Positions 147-15,216 of a DNA stretch of 64,000 nt are shown here, one piece after another. Under the pieces are notes generated by a model that saw only the letters and a list, made by a program, of their open reading frames with translations, did no database searches and was not told the DNA's origin. The stretch is taken from positions 1 through 64,000 of the forward strand of contig NW_005434662.1 of assembly GCF_000315625.1 (NCBI RefSeq), in the 5' to 3' direction. Source of the stretch: Guillardia theta CCMP2712. Taxonomy: Eukaryota > Protista > Cryptophyta. Position 1 is the first letter of the stretch, and each line of letters opens with the position of its first letter. The position numbers were made by a program, and so were the translations under genes.

Positions 147-1265
147 TCTTCTTCCAATTTCGCAATTCTCTATTCAATGCCAATGACTGCAACGATTCAC
201 AAGTCGATTCTTTACACCTGGCATGCAAGAGTTCAGCGATCTGGATCTCTAACGGCCCCATCCTTTCGTGTGCTCCCACAACACCTTGAATACTATCCTT
301 GAGATTCTTAAACAGTAGCTTGATTTTGTCCACGTTCCTCCAGAAGGCTTCTTCAGACTCAAGTGGCTGTTTCGCTAGCGCTCTGAGCTGATCTCTCCCT
401 TCGTCCTCACGGTAAGCTCGATAAGCTCAGCTCCACTTCGTTGCTTCACATTCCAGCGTACCAGTGCCAAAGTTTTGAAGAATGCCAAAGGATAGTTGCC
501 TCCTCCTGACATCTGCCACTCTATGTCGAAATCATCCTTTAGCTTAACTCGAAAATAACTGTTCGTGCTTACAAGTACCTCAGCAATATCCTCAAATAAG
601 ACTTCCACCTCTTGTCGATCAGCTGAGGATCTGAACAACCTCGGTGATATTTGGTACTTGTGTGGAGAGAAAACCACAGATGAATCGAGTGGATTACCCA
701 TCTCTCCATCCTCTGAAGCACCATCAATCACATCCTCGCTGGCTGCGATTGCCTCCTCCTCGAATTTTCCTCGCAACTTCTTAAACTTGTCAAGAGCATC
801 CTTGAATTTCTTCCCATTCTTCCAAATGTACCCAGCATGCAGAAACAACGCCGTGACCTGAATCTTCCACTCCAGCGAAGAGAATTTTTCTAGACCTTCT
901 GGAGACGACTCCCACATTTCATGAAATTCTCCAACAAACGATCCAGTCTCGTCAATCGGAAACAAGTCCAACAGTTTTAAGAAACAAGCCCCAAGATTCG
1001 GACGAAAACGACTCATGGCACCTGAGAAAGGAAGGAACAGGTCCTCGAGTTTTTCCTTGGAGGTAACCTTCCCATGCTTCAGCTTGTCGACCTGAACATC
1101 ACCATGGCTTCGTTTCAACTCCTCTTGCAGATCTGGCATGCTCATGATCGTTAACTTGGAGTTACCAATACCGTTCCAAAAAAAATGAGTAACAGCGTAC
1201 AGTACAACAACCAGGAGCCTTAAAGAGCCTTCAAACTCGTTGTCGATTCGACGCACAAAGACCAA
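139..1265 (-). CDS. Hypothetical intron-containing gene whose reading frame ends in the telomeric repeats (possibly truncated or a pseudogene)
   Basis: ORFs 375..1265 and 139..333 join in frame through a 44-nt GTGAGG...CAG intron (367..410), giving ...IELT|PLESEEAFW...; the stop codon TAG comes from TTTAGGG; no recognisable domain; start uncertain. Confidence 0.5.
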
Positions 1266-1622: not shown

Positions 1623-2048
1623 AGTTCCCTTCACACACCACCGCCTTACTTCGGACCACTGTACGAGTGCTGCCTCTTCGACAGCCGGCGCCTCTTGATT
1701 CCTCCGGCGCCGCCTCAGCTTCCCCAGGCTCCAACCAACCGGATCTTCTAAGTCACAGACTAAGCTCCAGCCCACTAGCTTGGACCTGCAGGCTTCACTT
1801 GGTTCACAACCTGATTAGACGCATCCCTTGAACTTATCGCGTCTGAAAGAACTTCTGAGAGGTTTGTCAGAACCCAAGTTCTTACAATTAGATTGCTAGA
1901 ATGTTGCTCGGCCTCGTTGTGGGCTTTTGCAATTTGATCCTAGTCTAAAGAGGCGCTCGAGCACTGGGAGTACACGGCCTACAATGCGAACCCTGCTTCT
2001 GAGGCGTCTTTCTACTTTCTACTTCTGCTATCTTCTCTTGGCTTCCTC

Positions 2049-2342
2049 AGCCTCAGTCAGGAGAGTTGCCTCTCCTCACCTTGGCCTTCGGTCGCCACCT
2101 ACTCTACCTCCCTTCAGCTTCCTCAGCCTCAGTCCGAGAAGAGTTGCCTCTCCTCACCTTGGCCTTCGGTCGCCTCCTACCTTCTCTCCTTACCTTGAGC
2201 TCAGCTCAAGCTCGGTACGGGCTCGCCCCGTCTTCTTCCTCGCCCTCGCCTTGCTCTTCTTTCATGTCTTCCTCTTCTTCGCCATCTTCCCTCATCTCCA
2301 CCCGCAGTCGGTCCTTCTTGTCCACCTTCAGCGAGCAGGCCA
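2049..2342 (+). repeat. Subtelomeric ~295-bp direct repeat, copy 1 (contains an internal ~75-bp tandem duplication)
   Basis: Highly similar to 3169..3466 (agcctcagtcaggagagttgcctctcctcacc...ccttcagcgagcaggcc). Confidence 0.9.
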
Positions 2343-3156
2343 GCACATGCATCTCTGCGAATTTACTCAGTGCTATGAACAGGAAGCTAAGAGATCGACG
2401 CTTTATGTCGTCGCTCTCCGCCTCCTGCTCAAGCTCAGCAGCTGCCGTTGCCCGTGGCGAGAACGCGCTGCCCCTCCTTGCCTTCTTGCTCTCTCCTTGC
2501 ACGCGAGTCCAGCGCTTGCTCTGCAGCCACTTCCCCAGCTTCTCCTTGAGCGCGTTGCGTCCCACTCCCTGCTCCTCTGGCGTCTTCGCCCACTCTCCCA
2601 GCGACATGAACTCCAGGCTCCCCGGAGAGTAGAACGTGTCGTGGAGGTTGCCAACGGCCTTGTCCAGGACCAGCTTGATCGGCTCGCTCGTCCCCGCCTC
2701 GTTCAAAGAAGTTGCATCTTCGATGACTGCTGACAGCTCGCTGACGAGCTGCATGTCCTCTTGGCTTGACGGAGATGCTGCCTCCATTGTGATCCTCTCC
2801 AGGTCTGTGAACTCCAGCCACTCTCCCTCGCTCTCCTCCTGTCGCTGCGCTGCGTCGCTGGTGCCCCGCTGACCAGCCGCCTCAGGCTCCTTGTCGAAGC
2901 CGACTGCTTCGAGCTTGGTTGCTGCGCCTTCGAGATAGAAGGGCAGCTCCTTCATCATGCATCGAGCATCCTCCGTGGAGCCGAGGAGGATGCATAGCTT
3001 GGACCCGTTCCAGGACTTGGTGTTCAAATCCTCCTCCATGTCGATGCCTTCAACTTTGATCTCGAGCCTGTTAGCGATCTCCAACAAGACTCTCTTGACT
3101 CTTGCGATGGACGTGTTGCCGCCGTTCAGTGCACAGCCCCTCCATCTCCTTCCTCG
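2206..3156 (-). pseudogene. 5'-truncated hypothetical ORF (acidic C-terminus)
   Basis: 293-aa ORF; the frame stays open upstream to the telomeric seed at 3157-3169 with no ATG in that extension; its 3' part is duplicated at 3169..3466; no recognisable domain. Confidence 0.4.
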
Positions 3157-3466: not shown

Positions 3467-4033
3467 ATGCTATCTCCTTCGTGTGCTTTGCGCCATGGGA
3501 GGGGGAGGAGACTCGGCGGGCTGCAGTCGGCACTCCGCTCTCCCTACACGCCGCTGATCCCAGTCCCCCGCGGGGCAGGATACTCGCCAGTCAGGAGGTT
3601 TAGTAGACGGTAGCCCGGCCTGTCGGGGGAGGCCCGGGATAGGCGGCTCACCAGTCTGGCAGGAGGCGGGGAAGCTTGTCACGCCCCCGTCACGGTGCAG
3701 CCTATCATCAGGCTCGCCAGTCAGGAGGCGGAGTAGCATTTGCTACCCATTTTTGAACCACCCCTTCAATACAGCTTTACCAAAACCCTTCTGTCGTGAA
3801 AGAAGTTGATAATGAGAAACAATCTCATCATTACTAATCAGATGGGAGAGAAGCACACGCCGGGGGTTGTTGCTTGCGCAGCAAGTCCAATTCATCCCTC
3901 AGGGGACTGAACTGCTTCTTCACGAACCAGATGCCTTGAGCTACGTTGACTGTGAGGGACGTAAATCTAAACACTGAGAGGCAAGCAAAGGTAGAATATT
4001 TAACTGCATTTCTTCGATCGATCTGCTTGTGCA

Positions 4034-4175
4034 GGTTATCTTCTTCGTGTTTTAGAAAGTTGATCGTCTACAAGCCTCGGCGGCAGATCAGAGAGACCAG
4101 AAGATGTACGACGACTGCTGGAAGGACTTGCTATCCCGGGAGGAAACTCAGCAGCTCCTGAGCTCCCTCAAAATC
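4034..4175 (+). pseudogene. Inverted, frameshifted fragment of the neighbouring RelA/SpoT-like membrane protein gene
   Basis: Reverse complement of 5298..5442 (region encoding VIFFVLNRRFIVYKSRRQIRGDQKMYDDCWKDLLSREETQQLLSSLKI) with small indels. Confidence 0.85.
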
Positions 4176-4223
4176 TTTTGATGACTTATGAGTTCCAACG
4201 GGTAGAAACAGAGCAAAGAGAGT

Positions 4224-4308
4224 CAAGCGAGAGGATTGAAGGAAGGGACGTGGGAAGGGAAAGACAATCAAGCAAGAGGATTGAAGGAAGGGACGTGGGA
4301 AGGGAAAG
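4224..4308 (+). repeat. Tandem duplication of a ~42-bp purine-rich unit
   Basis: caagc(g/a)agaggattgaaggaagggacgtgggaagggaaaga occurs twice. Confidence 0.8.
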
Positions 4309-4556
4309 ATTTAAAAGGCAGCAGAAAACGAAGAAGAGTAGATTGCAATTGATGAGAACGATGAGGAGGGATGTGGCTTGATCACAGCATCACTGAGATG
4401 CTTTTCGCATCTTTTTGTTGCTGATTTTATGCTTTTTTCGTTCCACTTTGATTTTATTTCAATTACCTCAAAACTTCACAAATCGGGCGAATCTTCATGA
4501 GAGCACACCTTTGTTCTCCCTTCATGCACTTGATTCATTTGTATCACCTCCATTCT

Positions 4557-7500
4557 CTACTCACATCGTGAGTTTCTAAAGATCACGTATCTCTTGTGCC
4601 CCTCCGCTGATTTCAGTGCCGCGAACTCTTCCAGCAGCAGCTGCAGCTCGCAGACGTGCCCAGCTACCCCCCACCTCTTCGCCCCCTCGTGGATCACCCG
4701 CAAGTTTATCCCCACGTCCCTGTAGCCTCCCGACGTCGACGCGTCGTAGTCCGGGTCGAGCCGGTTCTTGATCCTCACCACCTCCACTTCCGGGTCTTTG
4801 ATGATGACCTCCACGCACTCGACAAGCTGCCGCAGCTCTTTGAACACGATCGTCTGACGGACCACGTCTGTGAGCTTCAAGACTCTCCCAAAGTAAGACC
4901 TGACGAGCTTCTCGATGGCTCGGTTAGCGTTCTTGATGGACGCCCACTTGACCTGCGACGCCTTTTCTGCCTCCTCTGCGCACTCCCTCCAGCGAATTAG
5001 ATCCCCCTCCATTCCCTGAAAGTGTCCGTCGCTCGCCTCCGCCCAGGACTGCACTTTGCTCAAGAACATTGGCTCCAGCAAGATCGCCTGCGCGTACAGC
5101 TGGTCGAGGGACTCAATCTCCCTGTCCTGCTTCATAATCGTCCGCTTTGACCGCGTCAAGTACGTCCTAGCAAAGCTGCTGTTCTTTTGTCTCCTCAACA
5201 CGCTCGACAGCGGGTCAAGAATCGTAAGCTCCACCTCGCACAAGGCATCGAAGATCTTCAACTGCAGCGCTGGCTGCGGCCTTACCCGCCCGCATGTGAT
5301 CTTGAGGGAGCTCAGGAGCTGCTGAGTTTCCTCCCGGGATAGCAAGTCCTTCCAGCAGTCGTCGTACATCTTCTGGTCTCCTCTGATCTGCCGCCGAGAC
5401 TTGTAGACGATGAACCTTCTGTTCAACACGAAGAAGATAACCAGAGCAAGCAAGACTAGGCTGCTCAACCCGATGTCTGACTCCTTGAGCTTGGACGCGT
5501 CCCAATAGTATTGAGCCAGAGGAGGCAGGAAGGCTGAGATCGTGCAGTAGACGACGAAGGCCTTGAGCATGTAGCGCTCCTGGAACTGAACCACAAGACC
5601 CACCCACACGTCGAGCACTCCCCATGCGATGAAGAAGTCTCTCCGATTGGCATACAGAGACTCGGGGGACAAAGCAGCAAAGATCTCAAAAAGTCCGACA
5701 AGGTGGAACGCAGAGGTAAACAAGAGCTTTGCGAGCTGAACCTTCCCAAGCCGGGCGAAGATTGCGGCTCCTAGACAGCATATGCTCTGCAGCATCGCCA
5801 TGAGGAATATGCAAGTCGCTTGCCAGGTGAAGCGCAAGTCAACAAGAAGAGACTCGTCAGCACGAGGCAAAAAGTCTGATTGACAAAGAGGCAACAAAGG
5901 GAAAAGTTTGCAGCTTACTGAAGGAGGAATGACATATTTCCATTCCTTTCTGTCAACCGCCACGTCCTCAACGCCCTCTTCAGTCAGGTAGTGGAATGTG
6001 AGCGCATCTGTCTTGAGGTACGACATGAGCGCCGGAGTCAGCTTGATTTTGAAACCATTGGGATAGACCACATGAGGGAACGTGAAGAAGACCTTGTTCG
6101 CGACTGTCACGGATGAAGTCCAGTTGTACATCTGACAAGAATCTCTGACGAGGAGAAAGTCTTCTATCCTCACGCTATGGTCTTTGATAGAGATGTTCAT
6201 GTTCTTGTACCCTTCAAATGTGAACCTGGCATGCCTAACAGGTAAAACATGATTGGTGAAGATTAAATTCAACCGAAAGTTGTTGCTGTAAAGAATGATA
6301 AATCCGATCCCCGCAAGCAGCAGCAGCAGCTGAAACAAAGTCTTGTGCAGAACGTTCTTCAGCGGGTGTGACGAATACAGAATGCTCGTTGTATCAGCTT
6401 TCGACACGCCATGACCAGAAGATGTCAGGTATCTGTCCAGAATATTGCCGGGATACATGCTCTTGTAGATAAGCAGCGAAATGTCGGATTTCTCCTGCGC
6501 GAGAGACTTTGAGTAACCCATGGAGCTTGACATGTGGGTAGGAAGCAATGTCGCCGACGACGTCGACGACCGTCTCCTCCTGTCCTGATTTCTCTCTGTT
6601 TGCTCGTTCCCCCTCATAACTTCCGTCTCTTGTGATTGCCTGAAACGAAGAACGGTCTTCATCGACAAATACAACGCATGATGCTGCGAGTCTATAAGAG
6701 CATGGAGCGATTGTACCGCCAGTCTCAGCTCGCAGACGTGCCCAGCTACCCCCCACCTCTTCGCCCCCTCGTGGATCACCCGCAAGTTTATCCCCACGTC
6801 CCTGTAGCCTCCCGACGTCGACGCGTCGTAGTCCGGGTCGAGCCGGTTCTTGATCCTCACCACCTCCACTTCCGGGTCTTTGATGATGACCTCCACGCAC
6901 TCGACAAGCTGCCGCAGCTCTTTGAACACGATCGTCTGACGGACCACGTCTGTGAGTTTCGACGTGTCGCCATTGCACAACAGCAAAATCTTCTCGATGG
7001 CTCGGTTAGCGTTCTTGATGGACGCCCATTTGATTCGAGAAAGCTTGGAGCTGTCGTCCTTGCAGTCTCGCCATCGAAGGTAGTGCTTCCTCTTTGCCGA
7101 CGGGATGTTCATGAGAAAATATCCGTCGCTCGCCTCCGCCCAGGACTGTACCTTACTCAAGAACATGGGTGACACAAGTACCGCCTGAGAATACAGCTGG
7201 TCTAGATCCTTGCCCTCACACTCCCGCGCGTACTGAACTATCATGCTCGGCTGTGACGACGACGGAAGGGTAGATGTCGAAGAAGACAGCAGGGACTGTC
7301 TTCTCAGCCATGTGATCGAGGTTCCCCCCCCATCTCCTTCTACTTCTTCTTGAGACATTGTTGATTTAACCTGAGCCCGGCAGACAGCCTCCTTGAGCTC
7401 CTGTACCGCATTGAGCTCTCTCAGCTGCCTCCACTCCTCGTCGAATTGCTCTCCGAGGCCCGCTGCCTTGTTCATCATCCGCCTCCGAATCCCCTCTCGC

Positions 7501-8479
7501 AATCCAAGCAACGTCGCAAAGAAAACAAAGATGGCAAGGCACTTGTACGGTACCGTCGAGCTTGCAGCGATGCTGATGATTCGAATGAGCGACCCCACCG
7601 CTATCAGCTCAATAGTATATGCTTCCCATCGGATCAAAGGCAGGGGAAAAATCAACAAGTCCTGCCAATACAAAGTTCAATCAACATCCTTGACAACTGC
7701 CTCTGTCTCACCGTAAGCATGGCGATCAAGAACACATACCATGCGGTCCCCATCACCGTCCTTTCGCGTGCGGTGAGCATCATCTGTATAAACACACACA
7801 AGTTGCAAGCCGCATCTATCAGTCCACCCACCATGATGATCTGCAGGCAAACAAGACAGCTTGAGCAATCAAAATCACTGCCCACACAACTTCTCACCTG
7901 CTTGACTAGCCTCACACTCACCATGCTCAACATTCCTGCAGCCATAGCAATCACACCAACAAGGAAGTTGGTGAACACCTCCAAGAACGACTCCCAACCA
8001 CATGCTAGCTTTCCTGTTTCCGTCATGTCTGCCATGGAAAACTGTCGCACTCTCTCCTCAATCAGGTACGCGAAATACCCCGACCCGTGCACCTCCTTTA
8101 CCTTGAGCGCTATTGCAACAATCCAAGCAAACCCCCCGGCACCGAGCAAGAAGCGAAACCCAGTGAGCGCCATCGCTGCTGAGATCGGATCTTGTGAGAA
8201 GAGAACAAGCTTTGGCCTCTTCTGGTATATGACATTCTTGTTGAGGCTTCGCTGCATGTTGTCTCCTGGCAGCTGAGTGTACATTCGGACGAAGTCGGAA
8301 GTAAAATCTTGTCGTTGATCCCAGTAATCTTTCAAATCTACCGGGGAGATGAGAACTGGAGTGGAGTCCGATTGGATTGCCACGGATACTTCCATGTCTT
8401 CATCGCGGATCGAGCCAGCAGAGCCGCTGATGTCTTCAGCAATCATTCCTACTTCGGGAGAAACCTGATTGCTTTCCAT
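4557..8479 (-). CDS. Polytopic membrane protein with two RelA/SpoT synthetase-like (Pol-beta superfamily) nucleotidyltransferase domains, ~1,290 aa
   Basis: ORFs 7652..8479 and 4557..7673 join through a 50-nt GTGAGA...CAG intron (7662..7711; IAMLT|DLLIF); probable in-frame 57-nt intron at 7841..7897. Two hydrophobic blocks, each followed by a domain with IKNANRAIEK / LTDVVR / RIKNR / SGGYRD / CEL(Q/R)L / HxxY, in the order of the Rel synthetase motifs. Confidence 0.8.
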
Positions 8480-9932
8480 CGTATTTCGAAGTTGAGTGTG
8501 TCGATCTTTGTTACAAACTTGTATTCGTCGCCTACTCGAGGTTCTTTCTTCCGGCCTTCTTCCTTTTCTTTCCTCTCCTTTTCTCTCTTCGCCACCTCCC
8601 CCCTATCTCACTCTTCTCTCTTTCCCCCTCTTCTCCTATTCTCTCCCAATCTGTCTCTGCTCTGTTCTTTCCTCACTGCTACCCTCCGAGCATCTGGTCT
8701 CCTGCCCCTCCTCAGATCGTCTGTCCAAATGGAGAGGAGGGTACATTCTTAGTAAAGGGGCTAAAACATTGTACACTTAATAATGCTTTACTAGTAGAAT
8801 GATACTTGGCTGCGAGGAGTCCGCAGTGGTAATCTGAAAAAAAACAATATCCGATCCATCGTATTGACAGTCGCGGAGGGAGAGAGTACCCCTACTTGTG
8901 TGGCGTCAAAGTAGTTTTTAAAAAGGCACGAGTGACTAGCGCAGCGCCGAAGTGGCTAAAATCTTACTAATAAAACAATATATTTGTAGCACTTGTGTAA
9001 TAAAAATATCCTGGCACGGCAGTTATTATTATTAATAAAAGTAAAAGCATCACTCGAGGTCTTTCCAACTTTAGTTAACCTGGAGAAAGGGGTTTTAAGA
9101 TCTAGGTTAAATGCAGGTGACCCTAGCTAAAGATTCCAGTTATCAATTTGTACCACAACGATTGCTTTTTTTAAACTGTCAACGATTTGTTCCATCGATG
9201 CATTCATGCGGTTGCCATGCTATCCAGAAAGAATGCAGATCTGATGCGTATGCGAAGGTTGCGTTGCTGTCATATGAGATTCCAGCTGTCAATGCAGGAA
9301 ATCAACAACATGAAACGTACAGTATGAAATCTTTTATTGCATGAACTTCCTAAATTCAAGCAAATGCTCACAATATTTGTGTACCCTTCAGGATTCATGT
9401 CTCCGATCCATGGTGACCGCAGATGAACTCACTGGAATCTGCTTGGCTTGACACATGCACAGGAAGCGGTGACGTTAGCCCGTTGGAATATCCTCTTCAC
9501 CTCTGCCTGTTCTTGAACATATGCATGATACTATGGAAAGATGCTGTATGTTAATCATATGTACCGTTGAACATTACATTTGGATTCGTTATCATTGTCC
9601 TCGTTGAACACACAACAGGAAAGCTTTCAGTAACACAATCTTGCTGTCTCAGGATGATAGTTGATGTTATGTTGTCAGTCAGATGGAGAGAAAGAGGTAC
9701 ACGAGAAGGAAGTCGGACGAGGCTGCGCACGCCATGCAGTGTACGCTATGTGGAACGCCCTGCCAGGGCGCCGCTCGTCGGCTTTTACCGAGATATCGAA
9801 ACGTTGCGATTTAACCATTCAAAAACGCTATTCAGGCCCTGAGAATAGTAGTGACATAGTGGACCAAGTTAAGTAAACCTTTAGTACCTACGGATTCAGA
9901 GCTTCCAGACTCGAGGCTCTCTCGAGTGTCCG

Positions 9933-10955: not shown

Positions 10956-11849
10956 ATCTGCGTTCGCATTCAGAAGGACCCCCGAACACGTGCCATCGAT
11001 TTTACCTACCCACCCCAACAACAACCAGCATTACCACTCTAGGGTACGATTGAAGAAAAGCACCCCCACCCTCTTTTTCTATATACTCTTTCACTCCCTA
11101 CCCCTCCCCTAGAAGCAGGGCCATTTAAAAAGCATGATGAGAGAGCAATTCACCTTTACTCACTTATGTCCTTCTTTGAAATCAGAGGTACCCCTGATTT
11201 TCTCTTTCGCACTACCCCTAGGGCACCGCATCTACCACAGGATGCCATTGCTACCCTCCACCTCCAAGTTCACCACCCACTCACCCTTCTCCAAAGCTTC
11301 AATCACCCCCACCCTCTGTTGGTCAGTACTACCCCCAAGTATGAAGAAAACCCCGTCTTCCCTCCAAAATGTCCACCTGTCCATGCAGGGTTCGAGATCC
11401 CATTGGGGCCGCTGCCGGTTCAGACTTGCAGATGCTGCTCTTACGTTAGCCTATCTCCCTTGCCTGCGTACTGCAGGCTCCGCTCTCACGTGTTTGTGGA
11501 ACCTCAACCCTGTATCCTTCTCTTGCTTACTTTCTCGAATTTAACCAGATTTCATGTGTTTTTGCTTTCGAATCGTGTACCATGATTTGCATGTTTGTCC
11601 AAGGAAATAAATTCAGTCGAAATGGAACGAATTGAACTGAAAGTCGGGGAGACTTTGTTTGACGTTGGCTCTGGTCTGACTATTTCGACCAGTTTTGATT
11701 GCTTTCGTGATGTCGGTTGTATCTATCTCTGTGAAGGGAGCATTAAGAGTGTTCTGCTCTCGATTTGATTTCAATACGATTTACTGCACAAGTGACATGC
11801 TTAGATGGAGGCATAGAATCCAAAGAAATAATGAATATTTCATTTTCAG

Positions 11850-14800
11850 GAACCACAGTAAACTTCCTGGTTCAGCTTTCACATCGCATGCAGGATGTTT
11901 CCTGGAGGTTCAACCTCCCATGATTGATGGTGCTGAACTGAATTGGCCTAAGCAGGAAGAGGATATCCGGGGAAGAAACCAGAGGCGAAGAAGACCGGTC
12001 CAGCTGCTGCATTTCCAAAACCTATCAACCTACCTAGTCGTCGCAAGGAGAACAACGGATTCGATCCTAATGTTCAACTGGTTGGCACAGGCTCTTGGGC
12101 TGCTTCACAGAAATCAGCGAGTGGTACATTGGTCTCCAACTCGAACAGCCCCCTGCGCTCGGCAACTGTATCTGCTGCACCCGAAGTGCCACGACCTTCG
12201 CAGCCCATGGGTTGGAACACATCATCAGTGCAACCGAATCCTGTGTTGAATTCTGCGAATGCTAAACCAGATTCAGGGGCAGAATTTCCTAAACTTGGCG
12301 AAACTTCAAGTCGTCCAGCGATGACATTGACACAGGATTGGCAAATTGGCAGCCGTGAAGAAGCCAACTCATTTCCACGCCAGGAGCCTCCACAGTCTCG
12401 TGCCAATGCAAAGGAACAAGAAGCATTTAAGAAAGATTTGTCACCTCCACCTCTTGTTCAATTTTCCAATCATGATTGGGCAGAAGATGATGACGATGAA
12501 ATGGATTTCCAACAACCGATTGTCATAGCTGGTTCAGGAAATGATTCGTCTAAATCTCAAGTGAAGGCAGCTCCCATCGATCCAAAGGAGGAAGCAATTA
12601 TTCTGGCGAGGAAAAAACAGGTACAGTCAATTGTCTACGCTTTGAATTTTCTGAGAACGAATCAATCGACAGCAAGAGCTTGAACGAATGCAGGAAGAAT
12701 TGATCATCCAACAACGAAGAGCAGACATAGAAGCTTATGAGCGCGAAAAGAGATTGCAAGAAGAAGCAGAACAACGAAGACGGCAAGAAGAGATGGAACA
12801 GAAAAGACAGATAGTTGAAGAGCGCGAAAGACGATTTGATCGAGAGCGTGAAAGAGACAGATGGGTACTGAATATTACTTTGGTCAAAGGGTGTTCTAAT
12901 TGTGTCACCTCAACAGAGAAATGATGAGCCCAGGCGATCTGAGGAAGAGCGATGGTCTCGCACTTCTGATTTTCACAGAGTTGATGAAGAAAAACGATTG
13001 CAAGACCGTGAAGTCGCGAGCCAGAATGAATTGATGAAGAAGTCAATTGAGGCAGCAAGGAAAAGAAGAGAGGAGGAGGAGCAGAAAATGGAAGCTGAGC
13101 GAAGAGCTGCTGCTCAGGCTAGACTTGCTGCAATTGAAGAGAAGTTAGCTGCTCGAGCGAAACCTGGACAAGATGAAGGGCATAAGCAGAGTGATAGCAG
13201 AGAGTCTGAGGTAATGAAGGAATCATAATTTGAAAGATATTCATGGCATTTTCAGGAGAATGTGGATTCTTCAAATTCTTTGAAAGCCACGGAAGTGGAA
13301 CAAGGAGAAAGAAATGAATCCATCCTGGAGAGGCCCAACCTACAGTCCAGACAGGGTAATGCGGCAAATTATTGGAGAATTGATCAACGAAACCAGAAAG
13401 TAGAATGGCCTGATGCAGACCAAGAAGCTTGGAGGAAACTTCGTGAAGAAGAACGACCAGAAGCTCGTGGCATTCTCGAACAGCATGCTCCATCTCACAT
13501 GCAAAGAATGCAAGAAGGAAGAGGTTACCGTAGGGGATATGATGTCAAGCAGGAGAAATTTTTCAGCACAAACAGGTGAATTTGAAAATGAACACTTGTC
13601 TGAACCCTGTGCAACTGATTCCAAGTCTATTTGAATTTGCTAGATACGAGGTTGAAGATCAGACTGCTGCAAGCTTGAGGCGATTCATGGCAGAAAGGGA
13701 AGAACGAGAAATCAAGAACAAGGACAAGCAACAGAGGGATGTGACTTACAGAGATCGACAAAATGAGAAAGAAGTTGAAATTGTTGATAGAGCAACTTTG
13801 AAAAAACAGGCGTTGGAAGAGAGGCGCAGGCGCGAGGAAGACCTTCGAGCAAGGCAGGCTGAAGAATTGGAACATGAAAATCCAAGTAGGGAAAGGTTTC
13901 CAGTTCGAACAAAATTACAGTTAGCGAAAAGGACTTTGCCTCTGGATTCTTCAAGACAGCCACCAGGTTCTGTAGCTATGTGTTTGAAACTGTAATCTGA
14001 GTATATGATAGACGGAGCGAACAGTACAAATGGATCTCACGTGCAGAGAACAAAAGCAGATGTTCCTCCACCATCAGAAATGCCCATAAGCAGTGAATGG
14101 ATGGATCACTCGCAAACAGCATGCATACAAACGTTTGGAGCTCCTGAACTTGTCAACCAACTGGGTGCAAAAGCGTGGTCGTCTACCACAGTTACAGTGG
14201 CCCCAGGACGCAATGTTACTGGAAAAATGGCACCTCCTTTGGCACAGGGTTTACTATCAAATCCCGTAATCGGCATGCACACCAAACCTGATATTGCAAG
14301 ACAAGAAATTATGAATGGAAGTGCTTCTATGCCTGTCCGGTCGAAAATTCAAGATGCTAGTGATGTAGCAACAGGAGCAGCTGACTTCATCCTCGGTGAG
14401 GATGACGTCCGTCGAACGAATAATATGCAGAATGTTGAGGAGTCCTACACAGCAGTTCCAGAATCGGCCAATGTGATGGGAACTGATGCTGCATTCCAAC
14501 ATCTGCCCAGCTCAGAATGGACATCATGGCAAGGATGGAAGTATGATCAAACATTCAGCTCTTTCACAACAGCGGGTGTAAATTTAAATCTTAGTGATCT
14601 CCCTCTTCAAATCCCAAGTGATCAATCTCTTTGGGTCCCAAAGCAGGATCCAACTGATTCTTCCAAGGCGAACTCACTCTTCAAAGGTACTCCTTGGACC
14701 CCGATTTGGCAAACAGACACTTCAGTTGATCAAGCTGCGATTAGGCTGCCCGCAAATCAAGGACGGGGCTCTAATGAGAATGCGGGTGGGTCGGATTACT

Positions 14801-15216
14801 CTGTCTCTGGACAAGGCATGAGCAATCTGAAGAATACGAGAGAAGTCAAGGCTCTCAGGAAGTTCTCTCCACAGGCTGGTGGGCCAGTAAAGAAAGATTT
14901 GGGTACATTTTCCCCTCAGGTGACGAATATTGCAAATAGTACCGATTCCCCAAGGAATTCTTTTAGCTCTCAAGGGCCGAGGCCGAGCGGGAGGAGTGTC
15001 GCCACCATGAGCTACGGGAGAGTGAAGAAGATAATGCCACGACCACAAGGTGATGACTCGTCCAGGGAGTCAACGTCGGGAAGCAATATCGATGGAATTG
15101 GAATGGAAAGCGGAGATATCGCCCGTGGTGGATCTAGGGGCAAACTTTATGTACCGCAAAGTGTTAGGGAGGCTGCACATGCTCTTTCCAAGCAGCGGGG
15201 AGTTGTGGACCAGTGA
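11850..15216 (+). CDS. PRRC2/BAT2 (plant MOS1)-like low-complexity RNA-associated protein, multi-exon
   Basis: Frame upstream of ORF 12129 reads FPKPINLPSRRKENNGFDPNVQLVGTGSW (BAT2_N signature); later AARKRREEEEQKMEAERRAAAQARLAAIEEK (PRRC2-type coiled coil); start uncertain. Confidence 0.75.

Follow-up and report, generated by a model that had tools for sequence, protein, structure and literature searches.

Alarmone synthesis by Rel-type enzymes is familiar from bacteria and plastids, and a Rel-type domain has been predicted as an effector in fungal immune receptors. Here we describe a gene on the minus strand of Guillardia theta CCMP2712, at positions 4557-8479 of a 64,000-nucleotide stretch (hereafter the window) that forms the first 64 kb of contig NW_005434662.1 (C12). 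It encodes a polytopic membrane protein of 1,271 aa in which a unit of six transmembrane (TM) helices and one Rel-type synthetase domain occurs twice; we refer to the two soluble domains as D1 and D2. A large nuclear family that tethers two Rel-type domains to 12 membrane helices with an outward loop is something different from the systems described so far, and may represent a new kind of eukaryotic receptor enzyme.

The nearest described enzymes in fold are RelP and RelQ (PDB 6FGK, 6EWZ, 5DEC/5DED), which resemble the Guillardia domain in structure (Z 12.5-13.6, ~150 residues, 3.2-3.3 Å root-mean-square deviation), in size (~190 aa) and in the order and identity of the five synthetase motifs. 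However, they are only 13-16% identical to it and are free tetrameric enzymes, whereas the Guillardia domain is present twice, tethered to 12 membrane helices, and is encoded by a nuclear gene with introns; its second motif reads D-x-x-R and not D-x-x-G-x-R, and its third GYRD..N and not GYRS.H. Tas1 (PDB 6OX6), a (p)ppApp synthetase toxin delivered by type VI secretion, is the best match at the sequence level among solved structures when the family profile introduced below is used. It has the K...R...K and D-x-x-R-x-T pattern in common with the Guillardia domain and is 20-21% identical over the structural alignment (Z 11.0-11.7). Tas1 is nonetheless a secreted bacterial toxin with an immunity protein, while the Guillardia domain is duplicated and membrane-tethered, without secretion context or immunity gene. 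Exported synthetases such as SaEAS (PDB 8VX3; PMC12691689) also match in structure (Z 11.8); enzymes of this kind are active at sites where Rel-type synthetases are not classically found, and ppGpp and ppApp can both be their products (PMC12691689). They are soluble bacterial proteins with a signal peptide that act extracellularly, in contrast to the Guillardia domains, which are predicted to be cytoplasmic.

In eukaryotes, the plant and algal RelA/SpoT homologues (RSH1-4, CRSH) and the alga's own two HD_4 + RelA_SpoT genes, the only such loci in a six-frame search (C47:131263-132737 and C24:131220-132315), are likewise nuclear genes with a Rel-type synthetase domain. These canonical RSH proteins carry an HD hydrolase and score above Pfam thresholds. 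The window protein differs from them: it spans the membrane with 12 helices, has a second synthetase domain and lacks a signal or transit peptide, and scans with Pfam and NCBIfam gave no HD, TGS or ACT domain. Without these three domains it is not a long RSH. Nor is it a stand-alone small alarmone synthetase (SAS), since the SAS-sized domain is embedded twice in 1,271 aa together with 12 TM helices. The N-terminal RelA_SpoT effector domains of fungal NLR proteins (PMC4986451), compared here by description only, are another non-plastid eukaryotic output of receptor-like type. Those proteins are soluble, with NACHT/NB-ARC and repeats and a domain above the Pfam threshold, whereas the putative sensor part of the Guillardia protein is a membrane module with an outer loop. 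Finally, the class III membrane adenylyl cyclases (6TM-C1-6TM-C2) offer an analogy: both have two repeats of six helices plus catalytic domain, one domain conserved and the other divergent, and a long helix leading from TM6 to the catalytic part. Their catalytic fold and chemistry are unrelated; no cyclase appeared among the fold matches of D2 or of a paralogue's D1, and the likeness is one of layout only.

Fold of the soluble domains and layout of the membrane blocks

The soluble domain of ~190 aa occurs as D1 (6645-7217, minus strand) and as the C-terminal D2 (4560-5120, minus strand). All motif residues are intact in D2 (K..R..K..R, D..R, GYRD, ExQ and H..Y), while D1 keeps the catalytic Asp and Glu but has ExR in place of ExQ and Leu in place of one basic residue of the first motif. 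Neither Pfam nor NCBIfam returned a significant family for the window protein or for the 14 homologues scanned, and a single-sequence search of solved structures gave a weak match to Tas1 (E 0.66). A search of 1.84 billion cluster representatives (clusters at 50% identity) with D2 recovered 2,105 proteins at E <= 1e-3, many of them 1,000-1,700 aa long with two matched stretches. A profile made from an alignment of 44 such domains (A2) reached Tas1 (E 4.5e-4) and RelP/YwaC (E 3.8e-3) among solved structures, and its alignment with RelP paired K..K..R, the Asp, GYR, ExQ and H..Y residue for residue. Against the canonical third motif, GY(R/K)S.H, the G, Y and R align, the Ser is replaced by Asp and the His is unmatched in the profile alignment, H..Y being present in D2.

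Structure comparison pointed the same way. The AlphaFold model of D2, built on the A2 alignment, reached a pLDDT of 93.3, and all 50 of its top 50 Foldseek matches were Rel-type (RelP, RelQ, exported SAS, CapRel, Tas1, FaRel2, SpoT and Rel). With the same model, an exhaustive VIA structure search placed Rel-type proteins in all of the top 11 positions (Z 8.3-13.6), other nucleotidyltransferases scoring 7.2 or less. RelP scored 13.6 (152 aligned residues, 3.2 Å), RelQ 12.5, the exported SAS and CapRel 11.8 each and Tas1 11.0; FaRel2 came out at Z 5.9. For D1 we used that of a paralogue, P0003, which matched RelP, RelQ and Tas1 at Z 11.7-14.1. As modelled, the fold of both soluble domains is that of Rel-type synthetases, and they constitute a divergent member of the RSH synthetase superfamily.

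Each soluble domain follows a membrane block of six predicted helices. Block 1 (7485-8167, minus strand, a span that includes both introns) has a short first outer loop and block 2 (5400-6353, minus strand) a long one; both were delimited by hydropathy, by homology between the blocks and by the full-length AlphaFold model of P0003. Profile-profile comparison (hhalign) of the region before D1 with the region between the domains gave a probability of 99.3-99.8% (E 4e-20 in local and 8e-27 in global mode). The membrane regions are thus homologous, and the whole unit of membrane module and synthetase was duplicated.

P0003 has 1,195 aa and is ~63% identical to the window protein. In its model (pLDDT 74, pTM 0.57) each half has six hydrophobic helices, TM1' and TM2' (primes denote the second half) are separated by a beta-rich domain, and long cytoplasmic helices continue from TM6 and TM6'. 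A Y/F-D-x-x-W motif lies on each of these extensions, as FDEEWRQL (7422-7445, minus strand) after TM6 and as YDDCWKDL (5343-5366, minus strand) after TM6'. The stretches following both helices are strongly basic, the N-terminus is acidic and carries no signal peptide, and the positive-inside rule is obeyed by all loops of the second half and broken by one short loop of the first (TM3-TM4). Since each block has six helices, the N-terminus, D1, the linker and D2 fall on one side, which we take to be the cytoplasm, and the beta-rich loop of ~150 aa (5823-6269, minus strand) is predicted to be outside, in the extracellular space or a lumen.

In keeping with a position outside, the loop has one near-invariant Cys and others that are conserved, and the window protein carries the N-glycosylation sequons NIS and NWT there. 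It may be discoidin-like (F5/8 type C), the leads being weak. The loop profile matched part of a GH92 mannosidase at E 0.027 through a DP..W.L.GS.DG..W-type pattern, and PF00754 matched the loop of 1 of 26 members at E 0.066. Language-model neighbours of a typical member's loop were uniformly F5_F8_type_C, with a score of 0.88 that lies under the 0.9 mark, and the window's own, more divergent loop had no F5/8 type C neighbours. As for the membrane block, structure searches with the full-length P0003 model were dominated by synthetase matches and gave no convincing known relative of it. We do not claim TMEM45A as one, since for helical bundles the stated noise level lies above its Z of 10.2.

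An initial annotation of the window, made from the DNA letters and a list of open reading frames (ORFs), had proposed much of this layout. It described a protein of ~1,290 aa made of two homologous halves; the halves hold, as the profile comparison shows, and the length does not, a second intron bringing it to 1,271 aa. The motifs that it quoted (IKNANRAIEK, LTDVVR, SGGYRD, CELQL/CELRL, GHKRY and FDEEWRQL/YDDCWKDL) are present in the halves as written, each half has its hydrophobic block, and the order of the Rel synthetase motifs was recovered in the RelP profile alignment. The Rel-type nucleotidyltransferase (NTase) fold, which it had named beforehand as the test, was returned by the D2 model and its structural matches. 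Its TM-NTase-TM-NTase architecture agrees with the six helices per block, and the placement of both NTase domains on the cytoplasmic side, with the ~150-aa beta-rich loop outside, with the P0003 model and the distribution of charges. The scans likewise bore out the absence of HD, TGS and ACT domains, the N-terminus has no transit peptide, and the genome's separate HD-containing genes bore out the distinction from HD-type RSH. Its two remaining remarks on the domains, the change from ExQ to ExR in D1 and the asymmetry of the pair, were upheld by the comparison that follows.

Asymmetry, gene conversion and selection

We compared D1 and D2 across 37 proteins that carry both domains, numbering residues within the 191-aa D2 piece. 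Although the D2 domains of these relatives are only 40-50% identical overall, D2 has the consensus residue at every motif position covered (K67, R71, K75, R78, D89, R92, K122, R124, G136, Y137, R138, D139, N143, H159, E162, Q164, H179, Y182 and R186); at a few of these, one or two proteins depart from it. The first basic motif (K67, R71, K75, R78), the one that in RSH synthetases binds the phosphates of ATP, aligns to that of RelP and is complete in 37/37 D2 domains. The catalytic Asp is found in 37/37 proteins in both domains. The motif Glu is present in 36/37 D1 domains and wherever D2 covers its position, and each of the two residues aligns to its counterpart in RelP. D1 retains K75 and D89 in 37/37, R92 and E162 in 36/37 and K67 in 34/37, but keeps Arg78 in only 9/37, Tyr137 in 19/37, His179 in 22/37 and R71 in 26/37, and position 164 is Gln in 16/37 and Arg in 13/37. 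The window's own D1 has Leu at position 78, and its ExR corresponds to E567/R569 (numbering of the protein with the second intron read through). By this alignment the two domains are asymmetric, D2 being strictly conserved and D1 relaxed at substrate-binding positions.

The sequences of the two domains have not evolved separately. A tract of 235 nt in D2 (4644-4878) is 100% identical to one in D1 (6726-6960) that ends directly after the CEL codons. Identical tracts between D1 and D2 were present in 8/8 G. theta paralogues examined (137-391 identical nt, up to 99.6% over 478 nt), while identity from paralogue to paralogue across the same region is only ~66-72%. Among the 37 proteins, several lineages have a D1 whose closest counterpart is the D2 of the same protein and not another D1 (60-94% identity), whereas D1-D2 identity is 24-38% in most other lineages. 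The pattern is that of recurrent, independent intragenic gene conversion between D1 and D2. In the paralogues that could be placed on the coordinates of the window gene, the tract again ends right after the CEL codons, so that the ExQ/ExR difference and the distinct C-terminal helix of D1 survive; selection would thus seem to keep a few differences at the edges of an otherwise homogenised core. D1 is more than a decayed copy, its core having been repeatedly overwritten by D2. Gene conversion with a boundary that stays fixed is seen clearly in this natural case: the catalytic cores are made identical and a few functional differences are preserved.

Region-wise ratios of non-synonymous to synonymous substitution (dN/dS), calculated against three paralogues (97.5%, 89% and ~71% identical at the DNA level), were 0.03-0.43 in every region. 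They were lowest in D2 (0.07-0.19), and among the folded parts highest in the outer loop (0.13-0.35). None of the paralogues compared had a stop codon. Together the low ratios and the absence of stops indicate a functional gene under constraint, with no sign of an arms race.

Proposed function and its alternatives

We propose that D2 is an active pyrophosphokinase. With ATP as donor, it would place the beta,gamma-pyrophosphate on a purine nucleotide, at the 3'-OH, and so give (p)ppGpp and/or (p)ppApp. D1 would share with D2 the fold, an identical core and the Asp and Glu that bind metal; because it differs at substrate-contacting positions, it is likely to be a regulatory domain or dimer partner, and the two domains would then resemble C1 and C2 of membrane adenylyl cyclases. 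Activity would probably be gated by the outer loop and the membrane helices through the long TM6/TM6' helix with its Y-D-x-x-W motif. On this view the protein would be an alarmone synthetase of receptor type with the cytosol as its site of action, separate from the two canonical RSH enzymes. Taken as a whole (active D2, partner D1, control by outer loop and helices), this reading has in our view a somewhat better than even chance of being right. We advance more tentatively, as a possibility well short of an even chance, the fuller proposal that these are the first receptor-type alarmone synthetases, in which a ligand bound at a discoidin-like outer loop would activate the asymmetric D1/D2 pair and with it (p)ppGpp/(p)ppApp synthesis in the cytosol.

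Several observations weigh against a receptor-type synthetase. The window protein has no match to PF04607 (RelA_SpoT), for which the best homologue reached E 0.017 and 15.8 bits against a cut-off of 27, and a six-frame search of the genome with PF04607 found the two canonical RSH genes and none of the twin-domain loci. The topology was drawn from charge rules and from the model of a paralogue, in which confidence is moderate (pLDDT 74), and the leads to a ligand-binding outer loop are the weak ones given above. Prediction of a D1 + D2 complex scored 0.00, which speaks neither for nor against binding. The acceptor cannot be read from the fold, relatives of which make ppGpp or ppApp or modify tRNA. 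Finally, HD_4 turned up in the genome only in the two long RSH genes; no alarmone hydrolase of this type standing alone, which could switch a cytosolic signal off, was found.

The main rival to a messenger-making enzyme is an effector of death or immunity, whose activation, for example by a virus, a predator or contact with non-self, would lead as in bacterial toxic alarmone synthetases to runaway (p)ppApp/(p)ppGpp synthesis, ATP drain and arrest or death. Its strength lies in the company that the domain keeps: no solved structure matches its sequence better than that of the toxin Tas1, the structure searches also returned CapRel, FaRel2 and exported toxic synthetases, RelA_SpoT is a proposed effector domain of fungal NLR immune receptors (PMC4986451), and exported synthetases that make (p)ppGpp only are still toxic once in the cytoplasm (PMC12691689). 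A metagenomic relative of 1,959 aa, P0128, combines an ADP-ribosyltransferase (PF01129) and leucine-rich repeats (LRR_6/LRR_4) with a C-terminal synthetase-like domain, a layout of immune or conflict type. The size of the family, its gene clusters, the subtelomeric position of some copies and the failure to find a stand-alone hydrolase that would reverse the product also fit. The genes themselves, however, have dN/dS above 1 in no region, the ectodomain reaching 0.35 at most, and telomere arrays at just two further contigs besides the window's own among the starts checked. No immunity or antitoxin partner was identified, and the two-domain design, similar to that of membrane adenylyl cyclases, suggests graded regulation. 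We therefore consider an effector doubtful, though still the alternative to be taken most seriously.

A second alternative keeps the chemistry and changes the substrate. Were the domain to pyrophosphorylate something other than a free nucleotide, for example the 3' CCA end of tRNA, as CapRel, FaRel2 and PhRel2 do, the outcome would be a block of translation with no diffusible messenger. The tRNA pyrophosphokinase CapRel does lie near the nucleotide-specific enzymes in the structural ranking (Z 11.8), and several family-invariant residues are foreign to canonical (p)ppGpp synthetases (D..R for D..G.R, a KNR strand, GYRD..N and a terminal R.R). Yet the top fold and profile matches, RelP and RelQ (Z 12.5-13.6) and Tas1, act on nucleotides, FaRel2 is far weaker at Z 5.9, and a membrane tether is an odd fit for a tRNA substrate; such a target appears unlikely.

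We find it less likely again that the domains are catalytically dead nucleotide-binding modules serving as a sensor, scaffold or transporter regulator. Several substrate-binding residues are indeed lost in D1, and the Pfam RelA_SpoT model fails to recognise either domain. D2, however, holds the consensus at all catalytic and substrate motif positions in essentially all 37 relatives despite their divergence, and has the lowest dN/dS of any region, which is the pattern expected of an active enzyme. An artefact (pseudogene, misassembled repeat or bacterial contamination) is largely refuted and can practically be dismissed: the 235-nt identical tract could suggest assembly collapse and the exact protein was not found in database entries, but the gene has two spliceosomal introns at positions conserved among paralogues and a poly(A) site in RNA reads, all paralogues have an open frame under purifying selection, the D1/D2 layout recurs at ~29 loci and in transcriptomes of other cryptophytes, and contigs from independent DNA runs cover the locus.

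If a receptor-type synthetase is present and active, it would show that in eukaryotes a signal from outside the cell or from a lumen can act directly on (p)ppGpp/(p)ppApp chemistry in the cytosol. Cryptophytes and other marine protists would then have a pathway from membrane to nucleotide second messenger that parallels adenylyl cyclase signalling, and there would be a precedent for non-plastid alarmone synthesis in eukaryotes. Both ppGpp and a hydrolase, Mesh1, have been reported in animals. To our knowledge no synthetase for animal ppGpp has been described, so a cytosolic eukaryotic synthetase family would be a useful precedent there as well. Given its abundance (2,105 clusters at 50% identity, many of the proteins from marine samples), the family may also matter for plankton biology.

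Family, gene model and surroundings

Searched in six frames with the A2 profile, the genome (87.1 Mb, 669 contigs) gave 110 matches, which resolve into ~29 two-domain loci, their domains ~2.1 kb apart, and ~19 one-domain loci; this supplies the count of paralogues that the initial annotation had called for. Family members cluster on contigs C30, C206, C1 and C62. At least 25 further loci match the first two motifs of the profile only (e.g. C4:1071678-1071890, C229:10029-10202 and C524:2793-2960). We inspected three members of this more distant family. All are multi-TM proteins, ~850-1,500 aa long, in which a long loop separates the first helix from a cluster of helices and a synthetase-like domain forms the C-terminus. 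None has a Pfam family, and only the first two synthetase motifs match, plus GYRD in one of them.

All named homologues are from cryptophytes (Guillardia itself, Hanusia, Hemiselmis, Rhodomonas, Chroomonas, Cryptomonas paramecium and Proteomonas), and the D1/D2 layout was also found in the transcriptomes of other cryptophytes. A Tara Oceans marine metagenome contig of 59 kb (L017) has the two-unit layout at 3492-8885, in an uncultured, gene-dense eukaryote, with a long loop in the first membrane block too. The genes next to it encode a cyclic nucleotide (cNMP)-binding protein, an FKBP, an ML-domain protein and a CAD-like carbamoyl-phosphate synthase. Neither IMG/VR nor GTDB genomes, the latter searched with one protein and with an alignment of 12 sequences, returned close relatives; these searches were limited by their patterns and are silent on distant ones.

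The initial annotation had also called the system undescribed. We found no description of these membrane proteins in the literature searched, in which the RSH survey by Jimmy et al. is broad and included eukaryote genomes in its scan; to that extent the statement stands, but UniProt automatically names some paralogues 'RelA/SpoT domain-containing protein'. The exact window protein was not found among database entries.

The gene is subtelomeric, as had been annotated: a terminal array of CCCTAAA x18 lies at 20-147, near the start of the contig, and the 3' end of the gene is ~4.4 kb from it. The view that the family is fast-evolving and perhaps defence-related is not supported, dN/dS being well under 1 in every region. 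Among 16 family contig starts checked, a telomere array was present only at C5 and C21, which with the window's C12 makes three family loci near one. An interstitial TTAGGGT x4.4 lies at 1592-1622, ~1.45 kb inside the terminal array, with the G-rich strand inverted relative to the terminal CCCTAAA.

Two minus-strand ORFs (8479-7652 and 7673-4557) make up the gene, and a frame-restoring 50-nt intron (7711-7662, minus strand, GTGAGA..GGCAG), whose GT/AG ends are kept in paralogues while length and sequence differ, joins them in frame. The initial annotation had counted this intron alone. We find two introns by comparison of paralogues, the second being a 57-nt segment (7897-7841, minus strand, GTGAGA..TGCAG) that is in frame and free of stops in the window copy, where reading through it would add 19 residues. 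We regard it as an intron because it is spliced out in annotated paralogue models, because the C86 and C56 paralogues have in-frame stops inside it, and because it diverges fast while retaining its GT/AG ends. Both introns diverge much faster than the exons, and their positions are common to the paralogues.

Exon 1 (7898-8479, minus strand) starts with the ATG at 8479 and encodes an acidic N-terminus without signal or transit peptide; paralogue P0001 begins with the same residues. Exon 2 (7712-7840, minus strand) was set by paralogue models and splice ends. Exon 3 (4557-7661, minus strand, stop codon included) supplies the last part of membrane block 1 and all that follows it, namely D1, the linker, the second block with its ectodomain, and D2. 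A 3' untranslated region (4433-4556, minus strand) follows, defined by raw RNA-seq reads at 4433-4761, some of which may originate from the C286 copy (97.5% identical). A poly-T loose end before 4433 marks the poly(A) tail of a minus-strand mRNA, with its site ~124 nt past the stop codon. The RNA-seq data contained no reads across the intron junctions; their coverage is 3'-biased and perhaps partly from the C286 copy. At 7789-7991 a contig of run X1 (type guessed to be RNA) spans the 57-nt intron unspliced with zero mismatches, which may be intron retention or DNA.

Between the telomere and the gene, the ORFs at 375-1265 (minus strand), 1927-2733 (plus strand) and 2206-3087 (minus strand) have no Pfam family, and neither do those at 11695-12249 and 14005-15216. 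Directly beyond the poly(A) site of the gene, a 45-nt unit is repeated 2.1 times at 4215-4309 (94% matches). Upstream, at 8766-8900, RNA-seq reads with the first mate on the plus strand end sharply at 8854 (12 molecules), which suggests the end of a neighbouring transcript.

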